Shown: in pieces, positions 5,675-33,324 of the stretch | Layout of the letters: each line of letters begins with the position of its first letter | Numbering within the stretch: position 1 is the first letter of the stretch | Origin: Macrostomum lignano | Taxonomy: Eukaryota | DNA length: 33,535 nucleotides | Direction: 5' to 3' | Assembly (NCBI GenBank): GCA_002269645.1 | Contig: NIVC01003758.1 | Span: forward strand, 1 to 33,535 | The notes under the pieces: generated by a model | Database searches by the model: none | Told to the model about the DNA's origin: nothing | The model's input: the letters and a program-made list of their open reading frames with translations, nothing else | Program-made: the position numbers and the translations under genes

Positions 5675-6658
<984 letters not shown>

Positions 6659-9946: not shown

Positions 9947-11049
9947 TCACGGACTCTGGCCCCGGGGCGCAGCGTTTGGGTTGGCAGCTTCGAGGCCTCG
10001 AGCTGATCTGCTGCTGCAGCCAAAGATCTCACGGAATGCCCGACGAAATTGACGGCTCTTCCACAGCAGAACAATCCAGTTCACCGACTGATTGAACAGC
10101 ACAAGAACTCTTCCGATATCGACAATGCCCCAAAGCATCTTCTGGAAGGCAATTGAAGTCTCTGCGCCAATGATTGTCAGTGTCATGTTGATGAGGTTGC
10201 CCAAGACAGTTGGTATCGAGCAGACAAGCAGCACAGCGGACAGGGCCACACAAATAATGGTGTTGGTGAGCTTGTTCTCACCTGATCCCGCTCGAATCTA
10301 GCCTGCTCAGCCACAATATCCCTCATCTTGCAAATGAGGAATCCATTTGCTATCAAAATTATGAAGAACTCAACAGCCGCTGGGAGAACAAAAAGGCTTA
10401 CATAGGTGTAAAACACCGTGTACTGCCAGCCTTCAAGGGAAAAGAAGCAAACAGTCGAGTCGCCCCAAATAACCCAACGAAACTGCGAGCCGTAGGGAGC
10501 AGCCAGAGCCGCGCTGAGGATGGCAGCAAAGAGACACACCTTCATCGAAGTCTTCGCCGATACCGTCTGGAACTTCAACGGGAAATACACTGTCAGACAC
10601 CTGTCAACCACCATCACAAGGAACAGAACGCTGGAGCTGACGCTGAACAGTGCTTCAAGATGGCGCACAATGGTACAGGCAGCATCGGACGCGTTCACAT
10701 GAAAGAAACCAATTCTAGCGCCGCTGACCCAAGGCAGACCCTTGGCCAAGAACATCCACATTAATCCAACAATGAAGAGGTGGAAATTGTCAGAGATGGC
10801 GATGACACTGAAGTACACACCTTGACGCGTCAGAGGCCGCAGCTTCTTCAGGTAGATATAAGTAGTAAGACTGTTCCCGACGAATCCGCCTACCAAGAAG
10901 ATTGGGAGAATGATTCCGGACAGGAATCCCAGCACGGTGTTGATCCTGCAGAACGACACAGCCTCGGGAGCATTGCTCCAGCAGTCGATAAACAGAAACT
11001 GCAGGCTATCGATGAACTTCCGCGGCTTGTCAATCGTATCGTTCGACAT
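9947..11049 (-). CDS. Intronless class A (rhodopsin-like) peptide-receptor-like GPCR, about 367 aa; 1-nt frameshift near 10290 (pseudogene or assembly indel)
   Basis: Motifs seen: N-glycosylation site NDT after the first ATG (11049), TM1 FVGN, TM2 IAISD, TM3 C...DRC, TM5 LP. In the next frame, ENKLTNTII leads to TM6 CSIP and TM7 NQSVNWIV..SRQFR. The two ORFs (10183-11148, 9947-10249) together give 7 TMs. Confidence 0.85.
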
Positions 11050-12112
11050 TTCAAAGGCGTGTTGATGGGATCCCGGCGATGTGAGATCGGCCGGTTCACC
11101 TCGATGTGTATTTATTTCCTGCGCAGATCGCAGAAAATGATCGGCCAAGGGGGATCTGGGGTCACGCGCATTTTTTCCTTTTGAATAAATTGCAAAAGCA
11201 TTTGTGCAAAAATATTGGGTGATCGCCTATCAGTGGATGTGGCTCTTCCACAGCATCAAGTGATTCAATATCGTAATCAAGCACGATACCCGTTTGCGAT
11301 CATTTAAACGCTTTGCTCTCTCAATCAAATAATTGACATTCCGGAATTCGTCTCCTTTAATTATTATTTTTCAGTTGAATGAACAGAGCCGCAAAAGTGA
11401 GGCATTAAATTGCCTCAATTGCTTTCCTGTGGTTGTTAAAATCTTCTGCATGAGCGTCACTTTTCGATCAGTGTGGGCTGGTCATAGCATTGGTATAGTC
11501 GATTATTATGGACATTGTTATTTGGGAATCTCGTGCTTTTTCAAGCATTCTCGAGTCGGCTCGAGTGCTGCAACGTCCGCATACAAATAGCGTCGATGTC
11601 TCAGCACCAGGATGCTACGCCATAACGCTTGATAGTCCGGAAGCTGTGTACGGTGCTTATATCGCTGCTGCTGCCTAATGTTTGTCCCGCTTGTGACTTC
11701 TCGTGAAGCCATCTTGCTGGAAGTTTGTGAACTGCGCTCGTATGAGAATCAGTGAAGTTAAGCTACGTAGCTTAAGTAGCTTAATACTAGTAGTTCAATA
11801 CCTAATGTTAAGTATTAGGTAGTCGCCGGGCAAAGCCATCGGCAGTCCAGTCTTCTCTTGCACTTCTCTAAGGGCGGAGATCACCGCATAAAGAGGTGTA
11901 GCCCACGCAGAGGGGGCCAGGTGGGCCGCGGCCTCTTTAGTCGCCCCACAAAGTCGTGCTCCCCAAAAAAACTCAGTGAAAGAGAAAACCAAGCTAGACA
12001 AATGACAGGAGCTCAACTTTTATCACTTGAAAAAAGACATGGCATGCACCGGCCTAGAAGATAGCTAGGGGCGCGCCCATCAAGAGACTGACCAAGCGCC
12101 ACCAAGAGCCAC

Positions 12113-12984
12113 GGCAGAGCTGCGCCGTGGGCAGCTCAGCGGTCGGAAATTTATTTTTCACTCTGACAGCCAAGCAGCCCTTCGGGCCCTCTGCCGCAGC
12201 ACCACCAGCTCCAGATTTGTCCTGGACTGCAACGCCCAGCTCAATGGGCTTGCGCTAGGCAACCAGGTGGAGCTCAGATGGATCCCGGGCCACGCTGCTT
12301 TCCTCGGCAACGAGCGCGCTGACCTGCTGGCTAAGGCTGGCTCCGCCGACGCGCTGCTGGGGCCGGGCCCGGGAGCCCCCATCCCGGCCTCAGTGATCAA
12401 CTCCCGCGTTAAGCGCTAGGCTGATTCCGAGCATCTCCGCAGATGGCGCGACACCCGGAATTGCAGAAAATCCCGTGCTGCCGTCCCCTGCCCCTCTCCT
12501 CTCCTGCGTAGAGCCCTCCTCAGGCTCGCCAGCAGCCTGGGCGTAGAGACCTCAGAGAAGTTAGTATGGCCCCCTCCGGGCATGGCTGCTTCTCTCGCCA
12601 CCGCTTCCTTCAGGGCCAGGTACCCGAGGAGCGGTGCCCCTTATGCCGCTCAGGTAGTGAAAACGCTGAGCACTTCATCTGCCACTGCCCGGTTTTCACC
12701 AGGGCCAGGCTCACTCACCTCGGGCCGAACCCGGTTCTTTCCGACGTTTGCAGGCCCGAGAGCATCCCGCTGCTCGCCCGGTACCTCAGGGACACGGGAC
12801 GAGCTGACTTCTTCCCTACCGCGGGTGAGGAGGACGGCGCTGCAGGCGAGACCGACGGGTCCCCCTGAGCGACATCGCTTCGATGGTAGTCTTTGGTCGC
12901 CAGGGGCTAGTGGAATGGGCGGTCTCCTCCGCCTCCTCGCTGCATCCGCCGGACGCCCCCTGCAGCTATGTCAAGTAAGTCAAA
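12113..12984 (+). mobile_element. 5'-truncated non-LTR retrotransposon (RNase H + C-terminal CCHC-type; I/Loa/R1-like clade), decayed
   Basis: Translates to SDSQAALRAL...LRWIPGHAAFLGNERADLLAKAG (RNase H) and GHGCF...CPLC..ENAEHFICHCP. In-frame TAG at 12417. Tail ctgcagctatgtcaagtaagtcaa. Flanked by a perfect 15-bp direct repeat gccaccaagagccac (12098-12112 and 12985-12999). Confidence 0.92.
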
Positions 12985-13755
12985 GCCACCAAGAGCCACT
13001 GACAATGTCCGCGGGCTGGTCAATCGCATTGAAGAAGTCGGCCAGACTGCTGTAGAAATTCAAAACCGCTCCCTTTCCGCTCCCTCGAAACTTTTTATTC
13101 ACACTGTTGGGCTGTAGGCAGAAGATGGCAGTGGTGAGACCCAGCTCTGAGTGGGCTCACCACCTGACTCCGCATTGTTCATAGTTTAACTTCTCTAGTT
13201 TTTCGTAACCACTTCCAGCTGCTGTTGTGGTTAAGGAATACGCATTTCTGACCTGACTCAGGGGATAAGTCCACATTTTCCAATGATGCTAGTTTGACGA
13301 TATCAACTTTAGTTTGAATTGATTTAGCGGTAGATGATTTAGGTTTATACAACCAGTCGCAGCATGCGTATGCAATTGCAACTTTTAGACCAAAACTACT
13401 TGGTGCAGTTGCATTATTGGTCTGCGTGTGGGCATTAAGCAGCAGCAAAACACTATATTCCGTGTGAGCTATAAGTGAGCTTTTTCCGCCAGGATGCTTT
13501 TACAATACAAAAGCATTATATTGTAACTATTAAGCACTAAATGTTGAATGTACGCTCGTAACATTTGAAATTTAAAGTGGCTTCTTATCCAAGTTCTAGT
13601 TATCAAGGTACACCTGTTTTTGTATAAGGGCTTTTATATTGGGTTTCAGATTCTGCCTGCTGGGTGACAGACGACAGAATTTTTCAATTACTGAGAGATT
13701 ACGGCATCTTATCTGGTGAGTCTGTTGAGCACGAGGTATGATCCGGGCGTCCGCC

Positions 13756-13935: not shown

Positions 13936-14127
13936 CGACTCTTCACTCTTTTCCAAATATCCTCAGTTTTAAATTATCTAATATATTCATAAAGTCTGTT
14001 TTATTAAAAATTCTGATAATATTCAGAGTCGGAGGAGACAATCGCAGGGAGGTGGGACTGAAGGATCAGCAGATGAAATCCACAGTGAAGTGGCAGCTCT
14101 CACCCCGCTATTCTATGTTCAGAGGAA

Positions 14128-15081
14128 ATGCATCTCCAACCTGCCCGTCGAGTAGCTTTGCTGCTGCTATTGCTCGCTGCAGTCCTGCATCACGTGACCG
14201 AAGCCACTTGAGAACCTCTCCGACTACGAGACCGTGAAGTCGCACTGGTTCAGGATGAGGTCGACTGCATTATCGCTGCCAGCCAGCGACTCCGCTGTGC
14301 AGCTGGTGGCGTTCAACGCCAGCTCCGGCCTGTGCGCTCACTTCAGGTGTCGCCTGGGCCTGAGCCACTCCAGGAAGTGCCGCAATGCCAGCAAGAGAGC
14401 CCAGCCAGTGTGGGTGAGTCACACCTGTGTCACCTTGCAGACAGCCGGCAGTGACTGCTGGACCACCGTGCGGCGCAGGGTGCCCGGCTCAGTGGACTTT
14501 TACCGCGACTGGACTCAGTACCAGAGCGAGTTCGGCGAGGGACCCGACGGAAACTACTGGATCGGTGAGTGCATCCCAGATCTGCTCCATTCGCTTCCTT
14601 TTCCAACTCGGACTTCAATGACAAACACCGCCATGACGTCCGCATCTTCCCAGGCCTGAACTCTCTCCACGCTCTCACTGCTTCTGGTCCTCGGAAGCTG
14701 AGGATCCTGATGAAGGCGTGGAACGACTCTGAGCACTGGGCTGAGTACTCCAGCTTCTCCGTGGGTCCCGAGTCGGACAACTACCGGCTGAGCGTGTCCG
14801 GCTTCTCCGGCAGCGGCGGCATCGGCGACTGCCTCGCCTTCCTTCAGCAACGGAATGCAGTTCACCACGAAGGACGCCGATCACGACACCTACACTAAGA
14901 ACTGCGCTCAGAACTATATAAAGGTGCCTGGTGGTTCAACAGCTGTCACTGCACCCACCCGAACGGAGAGTACAAAGGCTCATCTGCCGCCATCGGAGGT
15001 GCTCATGCAGAGGGAGTCATTTGGAAGAACAACTTTGGCTACTACTGCTCGCTGAAGGAGTTTGAGATGCTGCTTCTGTAA
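14128..15081 (+). pseudogene. Fibrinogen-related domain (FReD/ficolin-like) gene with three apparent frameshifts; intron 14565-14653
   Basis: FReD motifs seen: WTTVRRRVPGSVDFYRDWTQY..FG..GNYWIG|LNSLHALT, AEYSSFSVGPESDNYRL, MQFTTKDADHD..NCA, KGAWWFNSCHCTHPNG, GVIW. A signal-peptide-like start MHLQPARRVALLLLLLAAVLHH is at 14128. Frame breaks near 14209, 14845 and 14919. Confidence 0.85.
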
Positions 15082-15510
15082 TGATAATCATAATAATAAT
15101 AATAATATTAATATTAATAAAAGAAAAATAATATTAGTAATAATAGTAAAAGAAGAAGAATAATAATAATAGTAGTAGTAATAGTAATAGTAATAATAAT
15201 AATGATAGTAATAATTGATTACACCTGCCCTAATGGCCAGATGTGCAACCGACAGCTCAGCCGCAGCTATTGGAACAGCCGTACGCATCTGAAGGCTGCG
15301 TACGGCTGTTCAGTCCAAGGACTGGGGGGTCACCACACACACCCTCAATTACCCCAGATAATGCTGGCACCCATTTTACAGCTGGGGGTGAACTGAAGCA
15401 ATGCAGAGTTAAGTGTCTTGCTCAATGACACAAATTGTTCCGAGTGGGTCGAGAATCGAACCCCCGACCTTCAAGTCATGTATCCGACACTCTAACTACT
15501 AGGCAAGCAA
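15082..15510 (-). mobile_element. tRNA-derived SINE, copy C, with an expanded (TTA/CTA)n tail at 15082-15214
   Basis: Body 15215-15510 is homologous to copies A and B. Confidence 0.85.
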
Positions 15511-15532
15511 CTTTGATCGATTCTCAAGCAAC

Positions 15533-15895
15533 GTTTACTTTGTTTACTTTGTTTACTTTGTTTACTTTGTTTACTTTGTTTACTTTGTTTACTTTGTTTA
15601 CTTTGTTTACTTTGTTTACTTTGTTTACTTTGTTTACTTTGTTTACTTTGTTTACTTTGTTTACTTTGTTTACTTTGTTTACTTTGTTTACTTTGTTTAC
15701 TTTGTTTACTTTGTTTACTTTGTTTACTTTGTTTACTTTGTTTACTTTGTTTACTTTGTTTACTTTGTTTACTTTGTTTACTTTGTTTACTTTGTTTACT
15801 TTGTTTACTTTGTTTACTTTGTTTACTTTGTTTACTTTGTTTACTTTGTTTACTTTGTTTACTTTGTTTACTTTGTTTACTTTGTTTACTTTGTT
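15533..15895. repeat. 9-bp minisatellite (gtttacttt)n, about 40 copies
   Basis: Perfect tandem array; source of the spurious LFT/VNK ORFs. Confidence 0.99.
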
Positions 15896-16056
15896 ATCGC
15901 TGCACAGAAATTCGTTGCTCACTGAAATGCGAGGCAAAACGCATTGATTATTCAAAAATATTACATGTAGATCAAAGAAAGTACGAGCCGTATAGAAGTA
16001 ACAACCCGGAAAAAAACATTGTAATTCTTCTAGTGGGAAGGCAGCTTGTCACGCAG

Positions 16057-17631
16057 CTACAGACAGCAGTGGCACTGGCAGAATCCAGCCATTCGAGTTT
16101 CAAGTCGTCGTGTCTCGCAACTTTTATGACACGTTTTGACGCAGTTTTCGCAAATGGCAGTCGCCCATATCAGCCGGCAGGTGATGCAGTGGTGCAGCTG
16201 CTGGGCGGCTTGCGCGTTGGCTCCGGTGAACATGCGGGTGCAACAGGTGGCGAGCTGAACCGTGACGTTTAAACCTCCGCGTGTCGGCTTGATCATCAGC
16301 AGCTGAGACTCCGGGTCGATCAGGCCCAAGTAGCTGAATTGGAGAAGAAATTTTGAGTATTTTTAAACGGGCGAATCAAGCATAATATTTTATTGACCCA
16401 TTATTTTATTATAGCTGATTACACAGGGACTCGGATACAGGCACACTCTCACTCAGAGTGCACAGCGTTCCCGACTTTCTCATCTTCGTGCTCATTCTAG
16501 TCCACAGAATCGAACTGTTCTTTGACCACGAACCTAGGTTAAACCTAGTTCAACCTACATTTATGTGTGCTCACGGAGCCATTGATTCGTAGAGACCAAA
16601 CGCTATCATTATAGGAGCAAAGGAGCAAAACTTAGCGGAAGAGATACACAGGTGAACAGGATCTACAGTATTTCTGTGTTTAAGACACTTTAAAAGGGTC
16701 TTCATAATTCAGAAAGACCTATAACAAAAAATTAACTTGTTTCGGGATACCTGACTACATACTACGAAGTGTAGAGTAACTAAGAACGTACCAATAATAC
16801 AAATGGCCATTACTGACTATTGACAATTCCTGTTTTCTGATTATTGAACAAATCACCGGACAATTAAAGTAGATCAAGGTCGTTCTTTTTTCGCTTGATT
16901 CCGAATCTTGGTACAAAATTTTCCCCACGAGATTATGCTCGAAGCTTTTGGTTTTAAGCAGGTTAACGATGTGGCTATCTCAAACAAATCATGATTGTTT
17001 TATTTTTTAAGTTCAGAAAATGAGACATTTTACGAGTATTTGCCATGAAAATCAGCCTCCAGCTACTTCAGTTGTCTATAAAGCATATCTCTCACATGTC
17101 GTCCTGCAGTCGTCGATGATCCCTGGCCGTCAGCACCGTTCTCACAACGGTCGACAAGCCGATCGCCAACCGCGGCAGCTGCAACACCGGCAACGCCAGC
17201 GTCCACCTGGTCTGGTAGCTCACTCTCTGGCCATGGATCAGCGATCTCACAAAGTGTTCGCAGTTATTGGTGACCAGATTATATCCTGTCTCGCCAATTC
17301 GAGCCAGGCACTCATTTACCACCAGAGCTCGCTTAGCTGCGTCGCAGTGGCATCGGTAAACTCGCACCGTGCAGCCTTGGGCGACGTCGCGGACGTCCTC
17401 CAACCGGACAGAAGCTCGAGGCTTCGTGTCAGGGCTGCCGGACAGGTGACAAAGCAACGGCAGCGGTTTTGCGCCGCCGCCTAACGGCCAGGCCCAGCCC
17501 AGGAAAATAGCGAAATGATACAGGGCCCGTCTGTCGAAGGCCACCGCTGAGCCCGGCACCATCGCCTTCAGGGCGGCGTCCAGACGCCACGATTCGAAAT
17601 CTTCGTAGCCGTTGGTGTATCCTACGCACAT
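16057..17631 (-). CDS. LRAT/H-NC domain + UBR-box-like zinc finger protein, paralog 1 (exons 17631-17096, 16333-16057; 270 aa)
   Basis: MCVGYTNGY start; YHFAIFLG, CHLSG and YNLVTNNCEHF give the His/His/Cys triad pattern. Donor AT|GTGAGA (17095) and acceptor tccaattcag (16334) join in phase 2 to YLGLIDP...CTRMF...HCITC..AICENCVKTCHKSC...FCQCH. Confidence 0.85.
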
Positions 17632-18097
17632 TCCTGGCAATGACTAAATCTAAGCAGCGAGAGGCAGTGACTATTTAACAAACAGGATTTCTGAAGCAGT
17701 GAGCCTTTTAGTAGCATGGTCCTTATACCGGTAATAGAGAACCAGTAGTTGTCTGTAACACGTACAGTAGCAATTCGTTGCAGTACGTTCGTAGTTCGTG
17801 AGGTAAAGCAAAATGCGTGCGGAGGCCTTTTGTTCGCATTTTTTACCATCTACGAGTAACAGATTTGCAAAAAATGCTTTTCTAGTATATGTAAAGCAAA
17901 CAATTATAAAAGGTCGCAACAGACTTTGAGAGTGCAGTTAAACAGTAGTCTGGATGACATATCTGCAGCTTGATTGATTAAAAACTAAATACGAACAACT
18001 TGCCACTGTACTTGCACTTCACAGCTTCTGTGGCACAGCTTCACAGCTTCTGGGTTCAATATACGGTAAGCGAGAGCAAACCTTTACTAACACAGGT

Positions 18098-18661
18098 CGC
18101 TTCCGGACATTTGCCCTCCGGCACTTCCCCTCCGGCACTTGCCCTCCGGCACTTCCCCTCGGCGGCGTTTGCCCTCCGGACATTTGCCCTCCGGGACATT
18201 TCCCCTCCGGACATTTGCCCTCCGGACATTTGCCCTCCGGACATTTGCCCTCCGGACATTTCCCCTCCGCACATTTGCCCTCTGCAAATTTACCCCCTCG
18301 CACATTACTCACCTCACCTCCTCCTGTACCCACCCGTCGTTCCTCCAGCACCAACCTCATCCTCCCGCCTCTTGCATCCATCAGGTTCTTCTCCAGCCAA
18401 CAACTCATCCTTTTCTAGTAAGCAATATATACCCGCGCCCTACCCTATCCCCAGCCTTACCTGTACTTTTCCAGAGGGGAAATGTCCGGAGGGGAAATGT
18501 CCCCGAGGGCAAATGTCCCCGAGGGCAAATGTCCGGAGGGCAAATGTCCGGAGGGCAAATGTCCCCGAGGGCAAATGTCCTCGAGGGCAAATGTCCGGAG
18601 GGGAAATGCCGGAGGGCAAATGTCCGGAGGGCAAATGCCGGAGGGCAAATGTCCGGTAGCC
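18098..18661. mobile_element. Non-autonomous foldback/Mutator-like DNA element: long inverted arms built from 15-bp tandem units, 9-bp TSD
   Basis: Left arm (about 18098-18298) is made of tccggacatttgccc-type units; right arm (about 18473-18661) is made of their reverse complement. Termini are cgcttccggacatttgccc and, on the reverse complement, ggctaccggacatttgccc. Direct repeat aacacaggt at 18089-18097 and 18662-18670. Confidence 0.85.
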
Positions 18662-19932
18662 AACACAGGTACATGTAAAGACGAGTGCGGAAAGTTGGTG
18701 CAATTTTGATTGTTCTTAAGAGAACGGCGGTCGCAGCCTACAGTGTAACTGTCATTCTTCCCAGGAGTTCGCGATCAGTGTACTTGTGCAAGCACTGTTC
18801 TTTTATATGCCACATGCTCGCTTTATCGTGACGTGGTGCCTGCATCTGCATGCAGACATGGAGTCTCAGAGAAGACGGTAGAGCCCAGGCCTTCTTCGTG
18901 TGCTCTAATGGCTGCATGCTCTGAAGGCCTAGTCGAGTATGACAGCACGGAATTAGTGCTATCAACACGGTCAAAAAACAAAATCAAGGAAATATTGAAA
19001 GCACACGTAATGTATTACATAAAATTTGCTTGATAGTACTATAAGTTTATTAATAGCTTTGATATACATATAGCTTTATATAGTGTCAAGTAGGCATACA
19101 TTTATAGATACAAGTAAGATATGAGCGACATGAAGGCCGCTACACTTCCTCGAAGTTTAACTGTTTTGAGACAGGAATTATCCGGTTTTCGATATTAAAT
19201 TCCCCCAAAATGTAGCCTTCTGGACTTCTGAATTGAAACTGAAACAACTATGCGTTTTTATCCGAGATTTTATCAAGCTTTTCGTTCAAAACAGCAAATG
19301 AAAACCGGCAAGCAAGCAATTAAAAACCCGGAAAATTTTCAGTTTTGCAATCTTAAATAACTCTTATCGACTAATATCAACAATCCTGTGAATTGATAAG
19401 CATTGAATAACATTGATAAGCCAAGGACCACTAGAAGTTACCGTTGTATCAGGACGCAACACTCGTAAATATTGCAAAATTATTTGAAGGCCCGCTGGTT
19501 TGAATTGAGTTCCTGGAACGTATAGACGCTAGGCACTGAAAGGAGCTAAGGTGACGGGAACTTTTAATCCAACTACAAGTACAAGTGGGATCAGACGCTT
19601 TCTTCATCCATGATCTACGGTATATAGAATTAAGATAGACTGGGCCATGGACAGCATGCAAATGTCTTACTGAGAAACTCCACTAAGAGACAAGCGAACC
19701 TACAAATTTGGCTGCTTGTAATTTATGACTGCATGAAAGGGTTTTGTCACAATTAAATTCTAAGTTTTCTGAATTTGCGCGCTGCCAATGGCCCAACCTA
19801 TCTTTATTTTTTAGGCTTTCAACTTCCGGTTCGGTTTTTACTGTCATTGGCAAAGGAAATACTGTAAAAGCCAAAGCCTAGTCAGTTACTAGATCACATG
19901 TTCTTTAGAGTACATGAACTTTAAGTGCAGAT

Positions 19933-22014
<2,082 letters not shown>

Positions 22015-22159
22015 TTCTACTACAAAGGATGGAATGGCCCTTCCGATAAATAAGCTTTGCAGAGACTGTTAAGAAGTTCCTTAATTACACAAGCCCTGTG
22101 AGCATCTCTACTGGATCGTTTTATACGCACAGGTTCTCTCGGCCAGTGTTCTTATCAAA

Positions 22160-22179
22160 GGCAATTCCGCGGAAATACC
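22160..22179. promoter_or_regulatory. 20-bp quasi-palindromic motif ggcaattccgcggaaatacc, about 146 nt upstream of the paralog 2 ATG
   Basis: 17/20 identical to the motif at 32172-32191; core is TTC-N4-GAA. Function is inferred only. Confidence 0.45.
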
Positions 22180-23234
22180 GTCGGTGTGAGTACAATAGAG
22201 GCTTTAGTTCAGTCTCTGTTTAGTTTTTCATTTGTAGGCAAACCGTTTTGGCAGTCTTGGACCGCGATAAATTTACAGTTATTTAACGTATAAGCTACAT
22301 CTAGACCAGAATATATTTCTGGAGTCTGGCTCCAAATGAAGAAAACAATTTATGTGTGCCTCGCAGGCTGGATCTATCAAGTTCGTAGTCAGGGGCTGTT
22401 TTTATTCAGACATGGACTCCTAGATTCTGCACCTATGGGGTTAATATTAGCAACCTATTACATGCTTGTTTGTATTAAAACCAATTAAAACCAGTGTTAG
22501 TCCACTAAGACAGATCATAAATAAACCAGTGGCCTAGACCGCAAGGACTCACGACTGCAATAAGAACTTGCTTTATTTTTATACACTGTTTTTTAACGAA
22601 CAGTTTCCAATTATTTTATGTGTAAATTTGTAAAAAAACAATCACAAGTAACGATTACAAACCGCAAAAGTTAAAACTTGCAACAATAATCAATACGAGC
22701 GTAGCATTGACAATGGTTTCTTTGTTTTTATACAAAGTACAACTTATTTTCTTAGAAACATATTAAGTAGCTCTAAAACAACGATAATGACAACGCCAAC
22801 ACGCAAACGATGCTACTGCTATTCGGGTTACTTTTGAAAGTTACTAGCCGTTAATTATCTGAATCTTGTTTAGTGTACGAGCTACGTTTAGCCGAGAAAC
22901 TTAAGTAAAACAAAACTATTCAAACGGAGGGACCATGAAATAGCTGAGCATAGATGGAAACCAGAGCAGGGCCAATGAGGAAACAACAGAAGGAATCAAG
23001 GGCTCAATTCAATCTTTTACAGCAAAAGGAATAGAACAAATAAAGTCATTGATCAGAACAAAATATCAGACGAACTCGAATTAAAAAGGATTACCAACAG
23101 ATAAAGGAAAACAAAACAGCCGAGAGGAGGCAGAGATAACAGCAGACAGAAACGGCCAGAGGAGTGAGTCCTGCCGCAGCAGCACGAGCGAAAATATTTT
23201 AGTCTATATCGCGGAGGCCCCACAATATTTTAGT

Positions 23235-25302
23235 TCATTTTTTTTCTCTTTCGATTTCCTTCTTGTCTAGATCATCTTCGGTATCTTTGATTGCGAGAAT
23301 CTTTTGCGGCACTTTGGCGACGGTCCTGCCAACGAGTTTCAGTAAGCCGTCTGCTTCCCAGAACAGCTTGCAGCCAGCCTTCGCTGACATGATGGGCACA
23401 AAGGTCAGCGGGATACGGCGTATGGACCACTCGATCAGCAGCCGGATGGGGCACCAGAAGTCTTGCACCGAAGCTGAGCCTTTTCGATCGATCGCCATAA
23501 GCATCTCTTTTCGAATCTCTATCAGCACCCCCATGGCGGCCCTGCTCGATCCGTCCTTCGGAAGCCTATCCCCGATGTCCGTAATCCTAGTCACACAGCG
23601 GCCGAGCTTCTTCAGAGCCCATTTCTGCTTCTTCTTTACCTGACGGGAGAATGCTACATTGGCTTTGGCCCAGTTGCTGAAGTGCTCGCAGTTGCTTCCC
23701 ACGACGTGGTACTGTTTCTCTCCGACTCGCTTCTTCGCCCGTTCCAGCACAGTTTTCGGGTGGAAGCAGTCTAGACTGTGATAGTCAACTCTGTGCATGC
23801 ATTTTACAATGTCTTGAAGCTTTAAAGTGCTCTCTGCTATGCAAGCCTTTGTTGGCAGCTGATTCAAAAAGGCCTGAATAGTTGGCCTGTTTGACTCGCC
23901 AGTATATTCGATAACCTGAACTTCCTTGGAGTCGGGGAGTGTCTTTTCCACTATAGCGTGGTGCGAGTACAAAGACCTCCGAAAGTCAAGCTGGTCGGCC
24001 GGCTTCAGCTCGTCTATGTCGCTAACCTTGACACAGGCATACGGGCGCCCCATTTTGCCTCTGGAGAACCGGCCCTTGACCGCACGTCGGAGGGCCGAGA
24101 CTGTTTGCGGGATTCGGCGATCATCGAAGCTTCTTAGACTGATAGTTTGATCGCACTGATCGCACACGAGCAGGTCATCGTCGGGATCCCCTTCTACCGG
24201 ATGGAGGCTGGCGAAGTTTCCGCAGCACTTTGACAGCTTTTTATATTTCTCTGGAATCGCAGCTATTTTCTTGTCGCTCTGTTTGTCTTTCTCGTCGTCT
24301 GCAGCAGTTTCGAATTGGTCATTTTCTTTGTCCCAAGCTAAAAGAAGTTTTGTTTTGTTGCAAGTGCCGCACTGCTGCAGCACGCACGGCTTGCCTTCGG
24401 TCTCGCTGAGTACAAATTGAACCTGAGCAGAACCGCAGTGTTGGCACTCGAAAGTCTCATTTAGCTGTTTCTGTCCATCTTTCATTCTCTCTTCATTCTC
24501 GCACTTATCTTTCACCTCCTGATGTAGCAAATCGAATCTCTGCTTTGAGATTTTACTAGAACAATTTTGGCATTCAATCATGGTACCTCCCGTTGCAATT
24601 TTGTCAACCTGAACTTTGTCACCATTGCACCTGGGGCACTGGTCCCAGCGTAGTTCGGTGTCCCAAATGAAAGCGCTGTAAGGCTCTCTGCAGTCCAGAC
24701 AGTAATAAGATTTGGTTGGCCATTTGCATGTGCTTAGTTTGAAACTGTGAGGGTCTTGGTTGCCGCATACGCAGCCCACGCATCGCCAGAGTTCGTCTTG
24801 GTCGTTCTGAAGTAAGAGTTCGTGATAACAGAGTGAATTAGCGCATGCAGAGTGTAATTTGTTAAAGCTTCTGTAAACGCTCAGTTTTAAAACCCAAATA
24901 AAATCTGTACCTCATTGCAACTTACATCGGATGTGAATTCGTCATTCTTCTGTCCAGATTCCGGTTTGTCTGACGCACAGGAAGTTCCAGTGGCTTCATT
25001 TTTTCTGCCTTCTTCTCCAGTCTGCAGGGCATTCAAGTTGACGGTTAAGTGCTAAGCAGACACATTAAAATGGTTTTGAGCATAAATTATCTTTGAAATT
25101 TACTTGCCTCTAGAGCTCTGAGACAGAACTTGCAAATTTCCATCACTTCGTCCTGCATTATGAAGGCCTCCTGGCCGCACGACTTGCACAGGGCATTGCT
25201 GACGTCCCCGTTGAAGTCGAAAGTCGTGTCGCACCTGGAGCAGTGGGCTGTCCAGGATTCATCGAACTTGAAGCCACAGCTCTGGCAGTGCTTGCGGGAC
25301 AT
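23235..25302 (-). CDS. Multi-zinc-ribbon (CxxC-rich) + LRAT/H-NC domain protein (probable exons 25302-25108, 25051-24926, 24806-23235; about 630 aa)
   Basis: The large ORF has LRAT motifs YSHHAIV, VIEYTG and YHVVGSNCEHF after many CxxC pairs. The upstream 71-aa CxxC ORF joins in frame through a GAG|GCAAGT (GC-AG) intron and a GAT|GTAAGT intron. The upstream exon model is less certain than exon 3. Confidence 0.75.
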
Positions 25303-25886
25303 TGTTTTTGCAAGCTAATAGTCTTAACGTGTTGTTAGATAATCAGAGCTTTTTAAGGAATTTAATTTTCAAATCAATTTGCCAAATGGAAAAAAAACTC
25401 AGAAACTGTTAAATTCTTTTCGAATTAAAAAAAATGGTTTCTGTGGGTGGGCGCCACTGCGGAAAGCTCGATTTGGTTGTTAAAAAATAAAATAACCAAA
25501 GTACGCGAATAGAGAAAGAGTTAGACAGAAGCAGACTTTGCGCCCATAATGCGGTACTTCAGAATGGCGAGTACACACTGCAATGAGCGCAGCAGAGATA
25601 TCGCGAGAGTACGAATTAAGCTCTCATGTACATTCAATCTTCAATGCACTTAGGTCATAATTTTTCCTTCTCGGAGCAGTCATATTTGTAGCTATTCAAC
25701 AATACTGAGCGAATGAAGCGATACCATAAACCCTGTAGCTAGGGTTGGCAAACTCCAGCCCGAAGGTTATATATGCGGTTCACGAAGTCTCTTTATCCGA
25801 CCCTCGGGTCCTTTTAAACTTCACAATGGCAATCCACAATGGCTGAAGGTTGGTGTTTCAATTTATCTCAGCTACCAAGTCGGATC

Positions 25887-25975
25887 TCCTCTCCTCCTCT
25901 TCTCTCCCTTCTCTCCTCTCCTTTCTCTCCTCTGTCCTCTCTCTTCCCTCTTCTCTTTTATTTCCTCTCTTCTCC
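25887..25975. repeat. CT-rich low-complexity tract
   Basis: Reiterated ctctcctct-like units. Confidence 0.8.
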
Positions 25976-27483
25976 TATCTCATAGCTACATAGCTACATA
26001 TCTCATAGCTCAGCAACATTGAAAATTTTCCACCCTCGCGCCAGCCGTGTATATTTAGAGTTTCAAAACAGGTTTTTGTCGCCAGACTTGTGCCATAGAC
26101 GATTGATGATTTCGTCAACACAAACTTGGGCCATAGACAAAAACTTGGGCCATAGACGTCAGACAGGTCGAAGGAAATAACAGTCACATGGAGCAGACCC
26201 ATGCTGCGATCCCGTAAGCATCCATTACGGGATGCTTAGCCACGCCTGACCCCAACCCATTTGTTTTTGTTTGAGTTAGACCTCAGATTTTAGAATACAT
26301 GCAAAAATAGTTCCGGGGATTGGAGTTTCCCCGGGTTCAAAATCCGCGGGTTTCAACAGCTTGTCACTATATATATTTCTCGTAGATTAAATGACTCTAG
26401 CCAATACACGATTACGAGCCGTTTAAGCACGCTTTTGCGTTTAATGCACGCTTTTACAATAATTAAATCGTGTTAAAATAGTTTTTAATTCCATATAAAA
26501 GATCTAAAAAGCCTTTTATTACAAGCAACTTCACTACTATCAGGGACTTTCCAAGTCAGTAATCTAGATTAGAAACTGGATTGTTGAGATATGAATTTGT
26601 GTACATACAAAAATTATCAGATTTGAGACCATCGCGCGATTTAAAAAAAACTATCTGTCTAACAGTTTTAGAACTCGAAGAATTATAGAAAAAATACATT
26701 CAGGAAAAACTGAGTAGAAAATAGGGAAAAAATTTTTATCTTTAAAGCAACCGTCAAAAGCAGAAATGTGAAAGTCATTTTTATACACTTTTCACACTTC
26801 GGCCTATTTAACTGAAATTATAATCCTGTTAGAATAGTTAGTTAACGAAAAGTGAAAAATACATATTGGACTTTTGCAAGTTGCTCCGTAATTTTTTTCG
26901 GATTTTCCTGGTATTGATTTTACTCTCTTTTGCTCTTTTGCTCTTTGGCTGGATATCAAAGAATGGGATCATAGGGTACAAAGACAAAGCATTTTTAGCA
27001 ATCCTAAGGTCAATAAATAATTTTTTGCGTATAATTAAAAGATGTGTTGAGTACAAAACATACGATTGATTTTAATAACAGTGCAAAATGTGTTGTGTCG
27101 TGTAACCTGACAGACCAACTTAATGATAGATAATATTTTACGCTAATATTTCTACTATAACGTATATGATAACTATATTATTATTATTATTATTGTCTAT
27201 TACTTATACTGCCACTTTAAGTAGAGTAGTTGATAAATTATCTGTGTAATGTATTATTAATCACGTGATATCTCTAGCTCTTTTATTTATCGATCATGCA
27301 GTTTTTCTTAAATAGCAAAAATATAAATAAAGCAACTGTGCGCACCTAGCACTTTACTTTTCAACTCAACTGGAAAACTTCAAGCCTTGGCTACACACCA
27401 AAATGAGCTACAATCAAATTGCTAGAGTAACGAAAGGTAAATAGATGAGAAGTTACAACGTATTGATGAATGATCGTTTAACT

Positions 27484-28534
27484 TCAGTCTGAAAAACTCT
27501 CCATAAGAAATGTAGCAAATTCAGCGGGCGAAAAAAATGCGAAGAAGGAAAAGCTTTTACGACCTCGTACAGATGCCTGCAGGCCGCTACTCGAGACCGA
27601 AATCAAGAGCATATCACCCTCGGGGTCCATCAGTCCGTAGTCTCTGAAAGATTTTCGGATGTGTCTTTAAATTGCGAAATAAATTAAAGTACAGAAAGAA
27701 GTAGTCAATATTCTCTTATACGACGTAGTAAAATGCTCAGCTTTTTAGCATAAAATGCTCATTGTTTAGCAATTTGACGATCATTATTTACATTTTTAGT
27801 GCAGAACAATCCATTGCTACAAACAATGCATTGTCTGTAGGATCGTCAAACAGAAAAACAATGCAAAGAATCAGCGGTCGCATCACGTGACAACGATTTG
27901 TCTATGGCTCGCGCCTACCGGCGCTCGCCAGACAATCGTTGTCACGCACTGGGACCGCTGATTATTTATCCATTACCAACATGCGTCACACAAGCTTACA
28001 AATTGTCTAAGCAGTACGATGCGCAGCTTGATGAGGCCAACGAAGAGGATGATCCTCCGGAGATTCCTCCGATAATAAACCGGGGAATCTGAATAAATGG
28101 TACCACCGCAGTCCAAAGAGATTGATAGCTGACGGATTCCCCGTTGATCACACGGCGCACAAAGCTCTCACAGTTTTTAAAGAACAGGTCGTACCCTTCC
28201 TCGCCAACTCTCCAGAGGCACTCCCAGATCACTCGTGCCCTTTTGCTCTCACTGCAACTGCAGCAGTACACTCTAATAGTAGAATTCTGCACAACGGCTC
28301 TGAAGTCATCCAGTCTAACGGATGCTTTTGGCTGCGTGCTGGCACCACCTGACAGGTGGCAGATCAGAGGAATCGGCCCGAATTCCCGCCCCTGGGAAAA
28401 GCTAGGCCCAAGTAGATCGCAAAGTGATACAAGCCAATTCTGTTGAAGCTGATGGCCGAGCCTGGAGTCATGGCTTTCAAAGCAGATTCGACAGATTCGA
28501 AGTCTCTGTAGCCGTTAGTCCAGCCAACGCACAT
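27484..28534 (-). pseudogene. LRAT paralog 3: 1-nt deletion near 28375; exon 2 keeps the linker but lacks the zinc finger (exons 28534-28000, 27643-27484)
   Basis: MCVGWTNGY...YHFAIYLG in one frame, and PIPLICHLSG...FFKNCESF in the next. Exon 1 is 535 nt versus 536 nt in paralogs 1 and 5. The phase-2 intron TT|GTAAGC...ctttcag|A leads to DYGLMDPEGDMLLISVSSSGLQASVRGRKSF... and a stop without the Cys/His ligands. Confidence 0.75.
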
Positions 28535-28663
28535 GTCTGCTGTTAGCTCTGTTTGCTTGCAGGAGTTCCGTTTTCGCAATATGGAAAGCTGTGTTATATA
28601 GCTGCATGCTGAAATCAAGTAATTTTTATTCAAGTTTTAGTGTCTTTTGCATGAATTTTCCGC

Positions 28664-28683
28664 GGTAGTTCCACGGAATTTCC
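28664..28683. promoter_or_regulatory. 20-bp motif (reverse complement ggaaattccgtggaactacc), about 130 nt upstream of the paralog 3 ATG
   Basis: 18/20 identical to the motif at 32172-32191; a partial second copy (ttttccgcgg) lies just 5'. Confidence 0.45.
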
Positions 28684-30785
28684 GACACAAAGTCCCAGTA
28701 TACAAAAACCCAAACTTTTTTGTGCGAACTTCCCCTTTTTAAACTCTAAGCCTGAGATAAATAACATTTGAGCATAGTTAATAGTAATATACACATATGT
28801 ACTCAAGTACCCATCGAGTACTCGTGCTTGTTATGAGATGAGGTGCGCTGCATGGACAAAAGGAAAGCTGAGCAAAGCCAACTGGCACATTTTATTTCAT
28901 TATGGAAAACTTGAAAAATTAAAATATAATATAATACCTGCTTCTCCTACTTTGAGAACAGAATAAAAATTTTAGCACCTGGGCAACGCTTGGACGCGCA
29001 TAATATTTTAATAGCTTAACGCCAGGAATAAAATTTATTTTGCTTAGCAGGCAAATCTCGTGATAGGCTCCTGGTATTTTTACCCGAAGCAGTTTCCATA
29101 GGCGCTATTGCAGCACCAGCAAGCTCAAGCTCCCACAGCATCGATTTGTGTACTCTCTTAAGGTCTACGTTTCATACATATTTGAATCATCAGATGTCAA
29201 ACATTCACGGATGTGCTGTTTTTCGGCCTCCTTCCTTCCTGTGACATTTTAGTGCAGTATGCGTAAACGATTCCTCCTGTATCCCTTGGTGCATTACAGG
29301 TGATGATTCTTAAAAGCCTGGAGTTTGGACATCTGCTCAATCGGTTGGACCTCTCTTTGGTTATTAGCTTGTTTTACTCATCTTCTTGAATGAGTTGCTA
29401 TCAGTGTTTTAATAATTGGCACAATATTTTGTAACTTCAATAGATGTACCAGTTGTGCCATCTACATGTACAGTGAAACCCTTTTACACAGGATGGCAGT
29501 AGATTGTATTGTGCAGCAGGTGTGTTGAGACTCCACAGAAGCCTCTGGTGTGCACGGGATCCACAGTGAGGGATTGCCAGGAATGGGTAGGCAGGAAAGG
29601 TTATAACGACTAACGATGTTTCAGCTATCTGCATAAACATATAGATGAGATGCAAGCGTGTAAAACTGATTTGAACAAGTAATTAGCAAGCGTAGTTCGC
29701 GAGAAATACGCTCGACATCATGAAATAGAATGCACTTTTCTGGAAATAAAGTTTCAAGGACAACGAGCTATATGATTCTAAGGTTTATCACGGATTTTCC
29801 ATGGAATTTCTGAGGATTTTCCATGGACTTTATATTCAAAGATATTTACAGTTCAGCTTGAAAGAAAATCGAAAAATGAAGTTCCTTATTCCCAAGCTTA
29901 CCACAGCTAGTATTAGCACGCAGACTGTTGGAACCAATAACGTACATTAAATGCAGAATGTACATGTTTTTTTGCATTTCGTACTTTCAAGCCCGACTGC
30001 CACAGTTGTAAAGGCTTCTACTTATCTTTCCTTTCATTCCGTACTTCCGTGCCCATTTTAGAAATCCTCTAGCTCGCAATGACGAGTGCATGGACAGCGA
30101 GTTGCTCAGTCATATTAGTTGCTTTAATCACCTGGCATGCATATTTCAGAACTTTCATAGACAGTGGGTACACTGTCTCTCTAAACTATTGCAAACTTTA
30201 GTAAGCTTTTTGTATTTCCTTTTTGACTAGCTGCGTACACAACACGGAAACAAACCACTAGTATACTGTTGGCTTTAAATTGGTCTATTTGCATTATTTT
30301 ACAATAGCTACTACGAGCTACTAGCAGTAAATTTGGACCGCTACTCAATTTTATAAACGTCTTAGTAGACTGGTGGCTCTTTAGTTTATTCTGTCGCATA
30401 CACTCAGAAAGTGCCGTAAAAAGCACGTGTAAGTGGTTAGTTAAAAAGATTTGCTTCAAAACCATCGAAAACGTCTTAATTGTCTTTAACAATAATAAAA
30501 GCTGTACAGTAAACTGAAAGCATTATGAAGCCTGGGATTATTACTAAAATATCAGTTAAAAAGATTCATAGCTTAAGAATAATGGGGTCGTACTATAAAG
30601 CTGTCGTAGCGTAGGTTCGATCGTAAGTCGGAACTTTTTCACTGCGGAGATACATGTAGGAGCTAAGAACGATCTTATCTTACTATGGCTTCATAGAACG
30701 GGCCCAGAATCTTTCTCACTGATAAACAGAGTGTAGTCCAATGCATAAAGTTGTGTAAAACAATGTGTTTTTTGTAAAATAAGGG

Positions 30786-31771
30786 CTAACAAGAAGATGA
30801 GAGAGAGCCGTCACATTCGACTGATGAAGTAGATTCTTCTTGAAGATCCAGTTGCAGAGGCAGTTGCACTGCCTCGGATTTCATGGCGTGAGAGCACCGG
30901 CACACATTCTCAGACACAATTCCAGTTCGAAAAATACATTTTGCATGGCAAAGCTTCTGGCATGGCCGGCACACCGCCATCTTTTCACTGCCGCTGCAGC
31001 TTCTGCAGGTGTAGAGAAACTGCATTGGAAACGTGCTTAAGCCTCCGAATTCCCTTGTGCAGACAGAATTCAACTTGACGCCTTGTAAATGTAAACCATG
31101 CTTTGACAATATAATCTCTATTAGATCTCTTTCCGGATTAAGAAGTCCCAGTGATCTGAAATGGGAAAGCAGGCAGTGAATAACCATGCATCAGGATGCA
31201 GAAAAAGTAAAGAATTTCTCAACATTTACCGATTCTCCTCAAATTTGGATGCGCAGTTCGATGAAGCAGACGAAGTGGCGGCCCCGACTACAGCGCTACC
31301 CAGAAGAATTCGCGGCAGCTGAATTAACGGAGCTGCAAGAGTCCAAACGGCCTGATAGCTGGTGCTCTGACCGCAAATCACTTCTCTCACAAAGTGCTCG
31401 CAGTTGTTGGTCAGCGGATTGTAGCCAGCCTTGCCAACTAGATAGAGGCAATTGAGGATCACCTGAGATCTCTTGCTCGCGCTGCATTTGCAGTTGTACA
31501 CCCGGATGGTGCAGCTCTGGACGATGTCTCTGAAGTCGTCAAGTCGAACAGACGCCACCGGCTTCGTGCTGGCGTCTCCGGAGAGGTGGCACAGCAGCGG
31601 GATGGGCTCCGAGTCGTCGCCCTTGGGCCAGGCCCAGCCCAGGAAAACGGCGAAGTGAAAGAAGCCGATTCTGTTGAAGCTGACGGCGGACCCGGGCACG
31701 GCGGCAACGATCGCTTCTTCGACTCTGTCCGAAGCAAAGTCCGAGTAGCCGTTTGTAAAGCCGACGCACAT
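30786..31771 (-). CDS. LRAT/H-NC domain + UBR-box-like zinc finger protein, paralog 4 (exons 31771-31230, 31155-30786; 303 aa)
   Basis: A 74-nt phase-2 intron (CG|GTAAAT...ccatttcag|A) joins the LRAT exon (HFAVFLG, CHLSG, NNCEHF) to SLGLLNP...CTREFGGLSTFPMQFLYTCRSC..AVCRPCQKLCHAKC...VCRCSH. From recall, this resembles the FBXO11/UBR4-type UBR box (..SYPMHDFYRCHTC..AICVNCIKKCHQGH..FCDCG). Confidence 0.88.
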
Positions 31772-32171
31772 GACTTGAGGTGAAATGTGGTAAACAAGAT
31801 CCTTTTTGGACAGCCGAGACAGTTTGTTGGCTGATAAACTATCTAGTACGCTCTGCTGCAGTTTTTTTTCTAGAGCACTACGCCAAGTTCATTGTTTGTG
31901 CAAGCCAATCTGCAATCTACTTGCTTTTTCGACTGAAATTCGACTGAAGCGCAACAACCTACATGCTGAGTTGGTCATACGCAGATTGTACAGAACTAAA
32001 GTGACGCGTGAAAGACCTTGGACGCACTTGCGAATTTGTTTGCGTCCTTTTGTACAGCGAGTACGCTTTTATGCTACCTGTGGCTTTAAAAGTAAAATAC
32101 CTTTCTATACCATTGTACGGTGGTGAAAGGCGAGTCTGATGTTTTTGAAAGATGTAGAAGATAGAACTAAA

Positions 32172-32191
32172 GGAAATTCCATGGAAATACC
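32172..32191. promoter_or_regulatory. 20-bp motif ggaaattccatggaaatacc in the divergent promoter shared by paralogs 4 and 5
   Basis: 110 nt upstream of the paralog 5 ATG; matches the copies at 22160, 28664 and 29792. Confidence 0.45.
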
Positions 32192-32300
32192 TTCAAGTCT
32201 TTGGTTCCATATTTCTCTCTATTATATCTCTATTGTATTAGTGTAGTAAGGCTGTTTGTTTTCACGCCATCAAGTGTATTTCACACAAAAGTTTAGAAAA

Positions 32301-33324
32301 ATGTGTGTCGGTTTTACTAATGGCTACGACGATTTTTCAGCATCGCGGGCCGATGACGCTCTGAAAGCCATGGTCCCAGGCTCCGCCATCAGCTTTAATC
32401 GAGTCGCTCTTGGCCACTTCGCCATCTTCCTAGGTTGGGCCTTCCCCAGAGGCGGGCAATCGGACCCGGTGCCTCTCCTGTGTCACTTCTCGGGCGAAGT
32501 TGCTTCGAATGCAAGAGTTTCCGTTCGAATCGATGACTTCCGCGACGTTGTCGGACTTTCTCCCATTCGAGTTTTCCACTGCAAGTGTAGCGCCGAGAAG
32601 CGAGCTCGAGTAGTGCTGGACTGCCTAAAACGAGTCGGAGAGACCAACTACAATCTAATGAAGAATAACTGCGAACATTTTGTTCGCGAGGTTATCAATG
32701 GAAAAGGAGAAAAGAAGAGCTACCAAGCTCGCCTTGCTGTACTACAGATTCCAAGACTCCCTCTCGGTGCTTTCTTCTGGAGCTCATCTTCGTCGGCCCT
32801 TGCAAAGAAGTGCTGCAAAATTAGCTTAACGAATGGGTGAGTCAAAATTAAAATAAATTTTCCTAATGTTATCCTTCTGGACACTTAAAAACATATTTTC
32901 GAATCGCAGTTCGTACGGCCTGTTCGATCCTCTGATGGACCTGCTGGAGATCATGGTTGACAATAACGGGCTCAGTGCAACTGTTCAGAAATACGCCAAA
33001 TGTACTGCTGACTTTTTTGCGTGCAAGGACGCTCGGTTTGTGCAGGAACTTTACCACAGCAGTTCGAATCAAGTAGTCTGCAGGCCCTGTAGGGAAGGGT
33101 GCCACGGGGGCTCCCTAACCAACTGTGTGAGTTACGTCATTTCGGACGTGTGTCGATGCAGTCACGACCGGCAGGAGAGCGAAGAACCGGCTGAACTGAT
33201 CGATGAGCCTGAGCTGCCTGCTGCTGCTCCTGGTCTATTCAATGATCCTTCTATTGACGCTTTGTGTGAATTGGAGATTCGCCGTTTCAAGAGAGAGGAA
33301 GAAACGTTAGGTATTTTAATCTGA
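32301..33324 (+). CDS. LRAT/H-NC domain + degenerate UBR-box-like finger protein, paralog 5 (exons 32301-32836, 32910-33324; 316 aa)
   Basis: A 73-nt phase-2 intron (GG|GTGAGT...gaatcgcag|T) joins the LRAT exon (GHFAIFLG, CHFSG, KNNCEHF) to SYGLFDP...CTADF..QELYHSSSNQVVCRPCREGCH...VCRCSH, followed by an acidic tail. Confidence 0.88.

Follow-up and report, generated by a model that had tools for sequence, protein, structure and literature searches.

UBR boxes have been described almost exclusively as the parts of ubiquitin ligases that recognise substrates, and the enzymes of the PLAAT and LRAT type are small, tail-anchored, lipid-modifying proteins that can dismantle organelle membranes. In UBR1, UBR2 and UBR4 the alpha-amino group of a ligand is bound by the Asp of an F-C-D-C-G motif (D150 in UBR2, D1715 in UBR4) together with the backbone of the preceding Phe (PMC10687169). 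Here we describe a stretch of 33,535 nucleotides from the flatworm Macrostomum lignano, hereafter the window, in which five LRAT-bearing paralogs (P1 to P5) occupy positions 16057-33324. We consider it fairly probable that the genes of this tandem array, so far seen in M. lignano only, encode a PLAAT-like thiol enzyme joined to a UBR-type finger that acts as a binding or targeting module. The window corresponds to contig NIVC01003758.1 of assembly GCA_002269645.1 (100% identity, coordinates unchanged). A sister copy of the region is present on NIVC01000865.1 at ~98.7% identity, and a larger third version is found on NIVC01001035.1.

Splicing of the LRAT and cysteine-rich reading frames

In the list of open reading frames (ORFs) of the window, the LRAT ORFs and the small Cys-rich ORFs stand apart as if they were separate genes. 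The sequence-only reading of this DNA had proposed that each pair is spliced into one protein and that all five paralogs are built in this way. The five LRAT ORFs were recovered where it had placed them; the copies were mapped by tblastn with the spliced proteins, and P1 to P5 matched one another in tblastn with E-values of 1e-18 to 1e-120. In all five, the T(G/A)A of a GT donor serves as the stop codon of the LRAT ORF, and the phase-2 intron ends at an AG acceptor located 3-4 codons upstream of a G(L/V)x(D/N)P motif. The four junctions that had been named, 17096/16333 (P1), 21165/20308 (P2), 31230/31155 (P4) and 32836/32910 (P5), proved exact and in frame, with donors GTGAGA, GTGAGT, GTAAAT and GTGAGT, respectively, and AG acceptors preceded by pyrimidine-rich tracts. 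The equivalent junction of P3 is 28000/27643, with the donor GTAAGC. The same junction was found in seven further paralogs on NIVC01001035.1 (introns of 72-850 nt), and the donor at the stop codon and the phase-2 acceptor are thus kept in 12 paralogs at about 45-60% protein identity. Splice signals conserved to this extent in position and phase are not expected by chance.

That the pairs form single spliced genes is supported by deposited, RNA-seq-derived models that match spliced P4, P1 and P5. The GenBank annotation of the assembly rests on a genome-guided RNA-seq transcriptome (StringTie/TACO and de novo assembly) in which TransDecoder identified the ORFs (PMC5730564). Spliced P4, encoded on the minus strand by exon 1 (31230-31771), a 74-nt phase-2 intron (31156-31229, GTAAAT...TTTCAG) and exon 2 (30786-31155), is identical to PAA49923.1/PAA75734.1 (hypothetical protein BOX15_Mlig006329) at 100% over all 303 aa. 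Spliced P1, also on the minus strand with exon 1 at 17096-17631, an intron of 762 nt at 16334-17095 (phase 2, GTGAGA...CAG) and exon 2 at 16057-16333, equals UniProt A0A1I8J5A6 exactly, which is an independent annotation. P5 is the plus-strand member (exon 1 at 32301-32836, a 73-nt phase-2 intron at 32837-32909 with GTGAGT...TCGCAG, and exon 2 at 32910-33324), and PAA75733.1 is near-identical to its spliced product. Their sole difference lies at the extreme C-terminus (window 33290-33324), where a single 1-nt indel between the copies gives ...RRFKREEETLGILI in the window and ...RRFKRRKKR in the sister copy. The PAA75733.1 model sits on the sister contig, where the DNA over the P5 junction is identical. 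Apart from this indel, close to the 3' end of P5 exon 2, the two assembly copies are 100% identical over P4 and P5, introns included, and hence carry no signal of constraint on these genes. No deposited gene model was found for P2 or P3, and the P3 locus has no GenBank gene call on either contig.

P2 (minus strand) consists of exon 1a (21754-22014) with the N-terminal half of the LRAT domain, exon 1b (21165-21460) with its C-terminal half, the NCEHF motif and the hydrophobic segment, a phase-2 intron of 856 nt (20309-21164) and exon 2 (19933-20308). Exons 1a and 1b would be separated by an extra phase-0 intron of 293 nt (21461-21753, GTGAAT...TTTTAAG) that is nearly all (CTAT)n; without it P2 reads ...EVVQ joined directly to GSTVRVYRC..., colinear with the other paralogs. 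This intron may have been created by the microsatellite or filled with it. A (CTAT)n tract of 1.1 kb also occurs upstream, at window positions 5662-6747 on the plus strand.

One tblastn match running over both domains (NIVC01001035.1:222151-250101, local 10028-11005) was considered as an intronless retrocopy and rejected, as its 72-nt intron is merely read through in frame and a stop is present at the donor. On the same contig, GenBank PAA73137.1 (338 aa, 'partial') fuses exons of two paralogs, which results in a duplicated peptide segment.

The proposal of a joined protein was thus confirmed by the deposited P4, P1 and P5 models. Its extension to all five paralogs holds for the junction (5/5) and fails for the finger in P3, which leaves 4/5 with the full architecture. 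P3 exon 1 (28000-28534, minus strand) encodes the LRAT domain, and its window copy lacks 1 nt of a G run (28377-28379); the sister contig has GGGG at this run and is in frame. Its exon-2 ORF has 52 codons, and the remnant at 27484-27643 (minus strand) reads DYGLMDPEGDML... followed by unrelated sequence and a stop, with homology to the other exons 2 limited to the first ~25 residues. A Cys-rich finger was absent downstream of P3 on either contig. The frameshift may be an assembly error, because the copies of the neighbouring gene, a sixth LRAT gene inside the cluster (23235-25302, minus strand), differ between the window and the sister contig by 9 indels and 0 substitutions. This pattern suggests assembly indel errors in the sixth gene itself, whose GenBank model has 620 aa and whose sister annotation has only 211 aa. 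Its architecture differs from that of P1 to P5: CxxC zinc-ribbon repeats at the N-terminus precede the LRAT domain, the C-terminal region is hydrophobic, and a UBR-like finger is lacking.

P3 is a finger-less member, possibly defective. A relative in the ENA metagenome assembly ERZ25074695 (ctg334529, 9749-10850) resembles it in having NCESF and a short exon-2-like tail (KDPEGDLVEV) with no finger, and contains an intervening sequence in the LRAT exon. Its identity is highest to P3 (45%) with bit scores similar for all paralogs, so that orthology of the two is suggestive only; the finger-less lineage may nevertheless be old.

The enzyme domain, the finger and their distribution

The assignment of the N-terminal domain to the LRAT/PLAAT type was upheld by Pfam. 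The five LRAT-bearing ORFs scored 32.2-50.2 bits against PF04970 (50.2 for P1, 32.2 for P2 exon 1b, 41.5 for P4 and 46.1 for P5) at a cutoff of 24.3, and the paralogs outside the window 34.5-49.4 bits; the ORF with the N-terminal half of P2 (21469-22014) gave no PF04970 match by itself. The His/His/Cys pattern is kept as had been described, with H39, H62 and the motif Cys invariant across the family, NCEHF in P1, P2, P4 (31391-31405) and P5, and NCESF in P3 with the Cys retained. The best solved match was PLAAT4 (E=5e-5), followed by weaker matches to the PLAAT2 and PLAAT3 structures (E=0.045-0.18), and H39 aligns with the first His of PLAAT4. About 22 residues past NCE stands a hydrophobic segment with a conserved LQ(L/I)PRL, which is internal and not C-terminal and is weaker in P5; the membrane anchor of PLAAT3 stands at the same spacing after the catalytic Cys. 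The N-terminus Met-Cys-Val-Gly-x-T-N-G-Y (residues 1-9; in P4 at 31745-31771, minus strand) is conserved in all paralogs, and its Cys2 may be lipidated or may act as an N-terminal Cys degron.

Exon 2 encodes a linker, beta-rich in P1, and a Cys-rich finger, which ends in ...FCQCHCCL and a stop in P1, is placed at 30885-31061 and followed by an acidic/Ser-rich tail in P4, and is degenerate in P5. A profile of five finger sequences matched the UBR box of UBR4 (8j9r, E=6e-8) and FBXO11 (7yrb, E=1e-5) in the PDB, with PHD fingers reaching only E=0.15-0.8, and alignment by hhalign to 24 UBR boxes gave a probability of 98.3% (E=2.4e-14). Among 1.84 billion representative proteins, the ~30 finger-region matches inspected all had the UBR-type Cys/His pattern, and the 6 that were checked in Pfam were all zf-UBR proteins, many with tandem UBR boxes. 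A word-indexed protein search with the finger alignment returned no matches, not even the family itself, and is uninformative. For an AlphaFold2 model of the P4 exon-2 domain (pLDDT 80.2), the top 13 Foldseek matches in the PDB were all UBR boxes (UBR6/FBXO11, UBR5 and UBR4), with target-normalised TM scores of 0.43-0.63 against isolated UBR-box chains and an rmsd of 2.5-4.4 Å over all 13. Profile, hhalign and Foldseek thus agree with the earlier proposal of a UBR-box-like domain, and place it nearest to UBR4 and FBXO11.

The zinc ligands were compared by column alignment on the three-zinc topology of the UBR box (PMC10687169). All 11 ligand positions of the UBR4 box are filled in P1, P2 and P4, where the second His of the Zn1 site has become Cys and the His of CxCxH probably takes the place of the last Cys ligand. 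In P5 the CxxC pair is gone along with its partner Cys, the last ligand of Zn1, so that 3/4 of the Zn1 ligands are missing. This joint loss removes exactly one zinc site of the UBR cross-brace and thereby provides an internal check on the assignment; the P5 finger would be a two-zinc remnant. These comparisons place the exon-2 domain in the UBR4/UBR5/FBXO11 subfamily, as a divergent UBR-type finger with predicted zinc binding. Because the finger stays below the Pfam cutoff, databases annotate the LRAT part only, under the name 'LRAT domain-containing', and a UniProt isoform lacking the NCEHF region has for the same reason been named 'Phorbol-ester/DAG-type domain-containing protein'.

Outside the family, the nearest LRAT domains are those of LRAT-caspase fusions of M. 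lignano (E=1e-22; PAA65113.1, PAA73134.1 and UniProt A0A1I8GH60, 'Caspase-8-like'). In NIVC01001035.1:202192-225597 the LRAT-caspase gene (local 10001-13406; PAA73134.1, 539 aa) is followed by two LRAT+UBR-like genes (local 14063-15860 and 16545-18056), an ankyrin-repeat gene (1109 aa) and, beyond it, a large LRAT-UBR array, with at least six further family members in NIVC01001035.1:222151-250101. The first of the two LRAT+UBR-like genes, directly 3' of the LRAT-caspase gene, keeps the canonical GFCDC (GFCDCQH). None of the 1.84 billion representative proteins from outside M. lignano combined LRAT and UBR domains, and our literature search returned nothing relevant on LRAT with a UBR box or on LRAT/NlpC with a caspase. 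The architecture appears to be lineage-restricted and undescribed, with parts that are known and gene models that are already deposited. The earlier view that no LRAT and UBR-box architecture had been described stands in so far as the pairing was found nowhere else, and needs the correction that the proteins themselves were in the databases with the LRAT part alone annotated.

Proposed function and alternative explanations

Each full-length protein would be made up of four pieces, namely the family-specific N-terminus Met-Cys-Val-Gly; a permuted NlpC/P60 domain of the LRAT/PLAAT type in which NCEHF supplies the nucleophilic Cys and two His are invariant; a segment of moderate hydrophobicity that includes LQ(L/I)PRL, at the position of the PLAAT anchor; and, after the phase-2 intron, a short beta-sheet linker (GLxDP...) with the divergent UBR-type zinc finger. 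The proteins may act like PLAATs, as membrane-associated thiol phospholipases A or acyltransferases with an acyl-Cys intermediate, and the finger may be a protein- or peptide-binding or targeting module that sets the partner or location of the enzyme. It would not be a canonical N-degron reader, because the Asp is replaced in all four window fingers and pocket positions differ between paralogs.

Several points weigh against this account. P1 and P2 have no transcript-based GenBank model, the (CTAT)n intron of P2 is inferred from colinearity only, and a search of full texts and Macrostomum supplements returned nothing on the expression or function of Mlig006329, Mlig013268, Mlig015909, Mlig027562 and Mlig017636. 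H62 is proposed as the second catalytic His from its invariance and from its place on the strand predicted as the partner; the hairpin has 11 additional residues, and HMMER leaves H62 unaligned to the second His of PLAAT4. The hydrophobic segment has a Kyte-Doolittle 19-residue mean of 1.0-1.6 as compared with 2.08 for PLAAT3, contains Arg, Gln and Pro, and is weaker than a typical transmembrane helix. Single-sequence scores of the finger against zf-UBR (PF02207) are 14-22.8 bits (20.4 for P2) at a cutoff of 25.2, so that no member passes, and P5 and one paralog on NIVC01001035.1 (L004f) gave no zf-UBR match in Pfam. Exon 2 matches UBR boxes by profile and by structure and misses the PF02207 cutoff (22.8 against 25.2 bits). 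The alignment behind the finger model was seeded with true UBR boxes, which makes the fold match partly circular, and its Foldseek E-values are weak (0.13-1.5). A full-length AlphaFold2 model from six sequences (pLDDT 46.6) had no Foldseek match at E<=0.001 and was discarded.

Selection was estimated from pairwise dN/dS in the joined frame. The LRAT domain gave ratios of 0.2-0.4 and the finger ratios of 0.2-0.7, below 1 for all pairs with measurable dS, dS being saturated for most paralog pairs. Domain-wide positive selection was not found by these pairwise ratios, and both exons are under purifying selection. The idea of a fast-evolving, possibly defence-related family was accordingly not borne out, as dN/dS is below 1 in both domains and the tandem expansion and the LRAT-caspase neighbour are circumstantial.

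Four other explanations were weighed against these data. That LRAT-only proteins end at the stop codon, with the small Cys-rich ORFs being independent genes or no genes at all, is hardly credible and already largely refuted. It draws on the separation of the ORFs in the raw list and on prokaryote-style gene callers, which give LRAT-only products for relatives (P0007 and P0008), but transcript-derived models join the exons as predicted, the splice signals and phase are kept across the 12 paralogs, most exon-2 ORFs are without a plausible start codon of their own just 5' of the conserved GLxDP, and exon 2, read in the joined frame, shows purifying selection. It is also very unlikely that the Cys-rich domain is another treble-clef or C1/PHD-like module, or a luminal or extracellular disulfide-rich domain. 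The phorbol-ester name of the UniProt isoform and the weak PHD matches would fit such a module, and the internal hydrophobic segment, if a true transmembrane helix, would place the membrane between the two domains. That segment, however, falls short of the threshold for a transmembrane helix and carries a conserved Q-x-P-R at its centre. UBR boxes are ahead of any other kind of finger by over six orders of magnitude in E-value and occupy the top of the structural search alone, and the Cys/His pattern fits the UBR ligand positions one for one, with the loss in P5 following the cross-brace.

A working N-degron reader, directing the acyltransferase or lipase towards proteins that carry particular N-termini, would fit the homology to UBR boxes, whose established role is to recognise N-termini. 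The paralog beside the LRAT-caspase gene retains both Phe and Asp in G-F-C-D-C, from which the ancestral finger was probably more canonical, and all family members begin with Met-Cys; an N-terminal Cys exposed after Met removal is a classic Arg/N-degron precursor. We nevertheless think this unlikely for the window proteins, because the residue equivalent to the alpha-amino-binding Asp is replaced in all of their fingers: the motifs are V-C-R-C in P4, F-C-Q-C in P1, A-C-S-C in P2 and V-C-R-C in P5, with R, Q, S and R at the Asp position and V, F, A and V at that of the preceding Phe. The second pocket residue of UBR4, Phe1671, is likewise unconserved, pocket positions vary by paralog, and P5 is without one zinc site. 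Pfam found no RING, HECT or F-box in the family proteins, only LRAT and the sub-threshold zf-UBR. Canonical N-degron binding is thus unlikely, and the suggestion of a peptide-terminus-guided enzyme did not survive this comparison in the window. The last alternative, which we also regard as improbable, is that the array is largely decaying, with fingers that are relics under relaxed constraint and an LRAT domain that alone matters, if anything does. It would explain why P3 is without a finger and frameshifted in the window, why P5 and the relative L004b (NIVC01001035.1) are short of zinc ligands, and why P1, P2 and P3 have no transcript-based GenBank model. The rates agree with it too: the youngest pair has a dN/dS of 0.69 in the finger and 0.36 in LRAT, and finger dN is 2-4x LRAT dN. 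On the other side, P1, P2, P4 and the P4-like paralogs agree in every zinc-ligand column at 32-50% overall identity, finger dN/dS is below 1 wherever dS is measurable, splice signals are intact in all copies, and the frameshift in P3 may be an assembly error.

If the PLAAT-like enzyme with a UBR-type targeting finger is the correct reading, a family joining both parts would be a new way of directing a membrane-active enzyme and would be evidence that UBR-type fingers can serve in settings other than the ubiquitin system. Next to further paralogs on NIVC01001035.1, a gene fuses this LRAT module to a caspase, and this neighbourhood hints, circumstantially, at a role in cell death or immunity. 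We give little credence to the bolder idea that the LRAT-UBR and LRAT-caspase proteins form one flatworm-specific cell-death or immune effector system, in which a caspase or other proteolytic cut would expose N-termini or the N-terminal Cys of the family, the diversified fingers would bind these, and the PLAAT-type phospholipase would be recruited to rupture or remodel the marked membrane. Were it true, degron-style recognition would be coupled to lipid chemistry and not to ubiquitination. Automated annotation misses the architecture with the finger just under the Pfam cutoff. Working transgenesis and RNA interference in M. lignano make the function directly testable.

Surroundings of the array and comparison with known systems

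Upstream of the cluster are two overlapping plus-strand ORFs (2086-3303 and 3252-4370), the second with three IBR domains, which suggests an RBR-type ubiquitin-ligase-like gene. The window further contains an ORF for a rhodopsin-family G-protein-coupled receptor (10183-11148, minus strand) and fragments of a fibrinogen C-terminal domain gene (14234-15055, plus strand). Two related plus-strand ORF fragments, at 12566-12868 and at 20480-20809, share a CPLC...HF(I/V)C.CP motif; the former has a weak match to zf-RVT, typical of the C-terminal zinc knuckles of reverse transcriptases, and the latter is a retroelement fragment lying antisense inside the intron of P2 that leads to exon 2. Repetitive tracts separate family members at 15435-15955 and 18000-18710, the one an 'FTL' repeat and the other rich in GC, with short peptide motifs recurring in all of its frames.

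The M. lignano family shares with PLAAT1-5 (HRASLS/H-rev107) and LRAT the permuted NlpC/P60 LRAT domain (PF04970), the NCEHF Cys motif, a conserved His on the preceding strand and a hydrophobic segment ~22 residues after the catalytic Cys. PLAATs end at their hydrophobic anchor, whereas the M. lignano proteins continue for ~120-150 residues with the linker and the UBR-like finger; they also have an inter-His hairpin that is ~11 residues longer, a less hydrophobic putative anchor and a family-specific Met-Cys N-terminal extension of ~24 residues. The finger in turn has the ligand order and spacing of the subfamily 2 UBR boxes of UBR4, UBR5 and UBR6/FBXO11 (C...CxxC...CxxC...CH..[H/C]...CxC), with the Thr after the first Cys and the Q..Y ahead of CxxC. 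It differs from them in having Cys for the second His of Zn1 and R, Q or S for the Asp of FCDCG, and in being without the last Cys ~9 residues after CxC, for which the His 2 residues after CxC is the likely substitute. The proteins that carry it have no E3 module (RING, HECT or F-box) and stay below the Pfam cutoff.

The best finger matches outside flatworms are tandem-UBR and UBR-calpain proteins from metagenome and genome data (for example P0013, P0014, P0039 and P0052), and in P0052 the UBR box is fused to another thiol hydrolase, calpain. Unlike the M. lignano family these proteins have no LRAT domain, keep HxxH and mostly CDCG, and pass the Pfam cutoff. The LRAT-caspase fusions are of the same species, begin with Met-Cys (in the longer GenBank model, P0010, after a leader of 32 residues), have the NNCEHFVR motif and, in one case, are encoded by a gene directly adjoining LRAT-UBR paralogs, but carry a C-terminal caspase (Peptidase_C14) in the place of the UBR-like finger.

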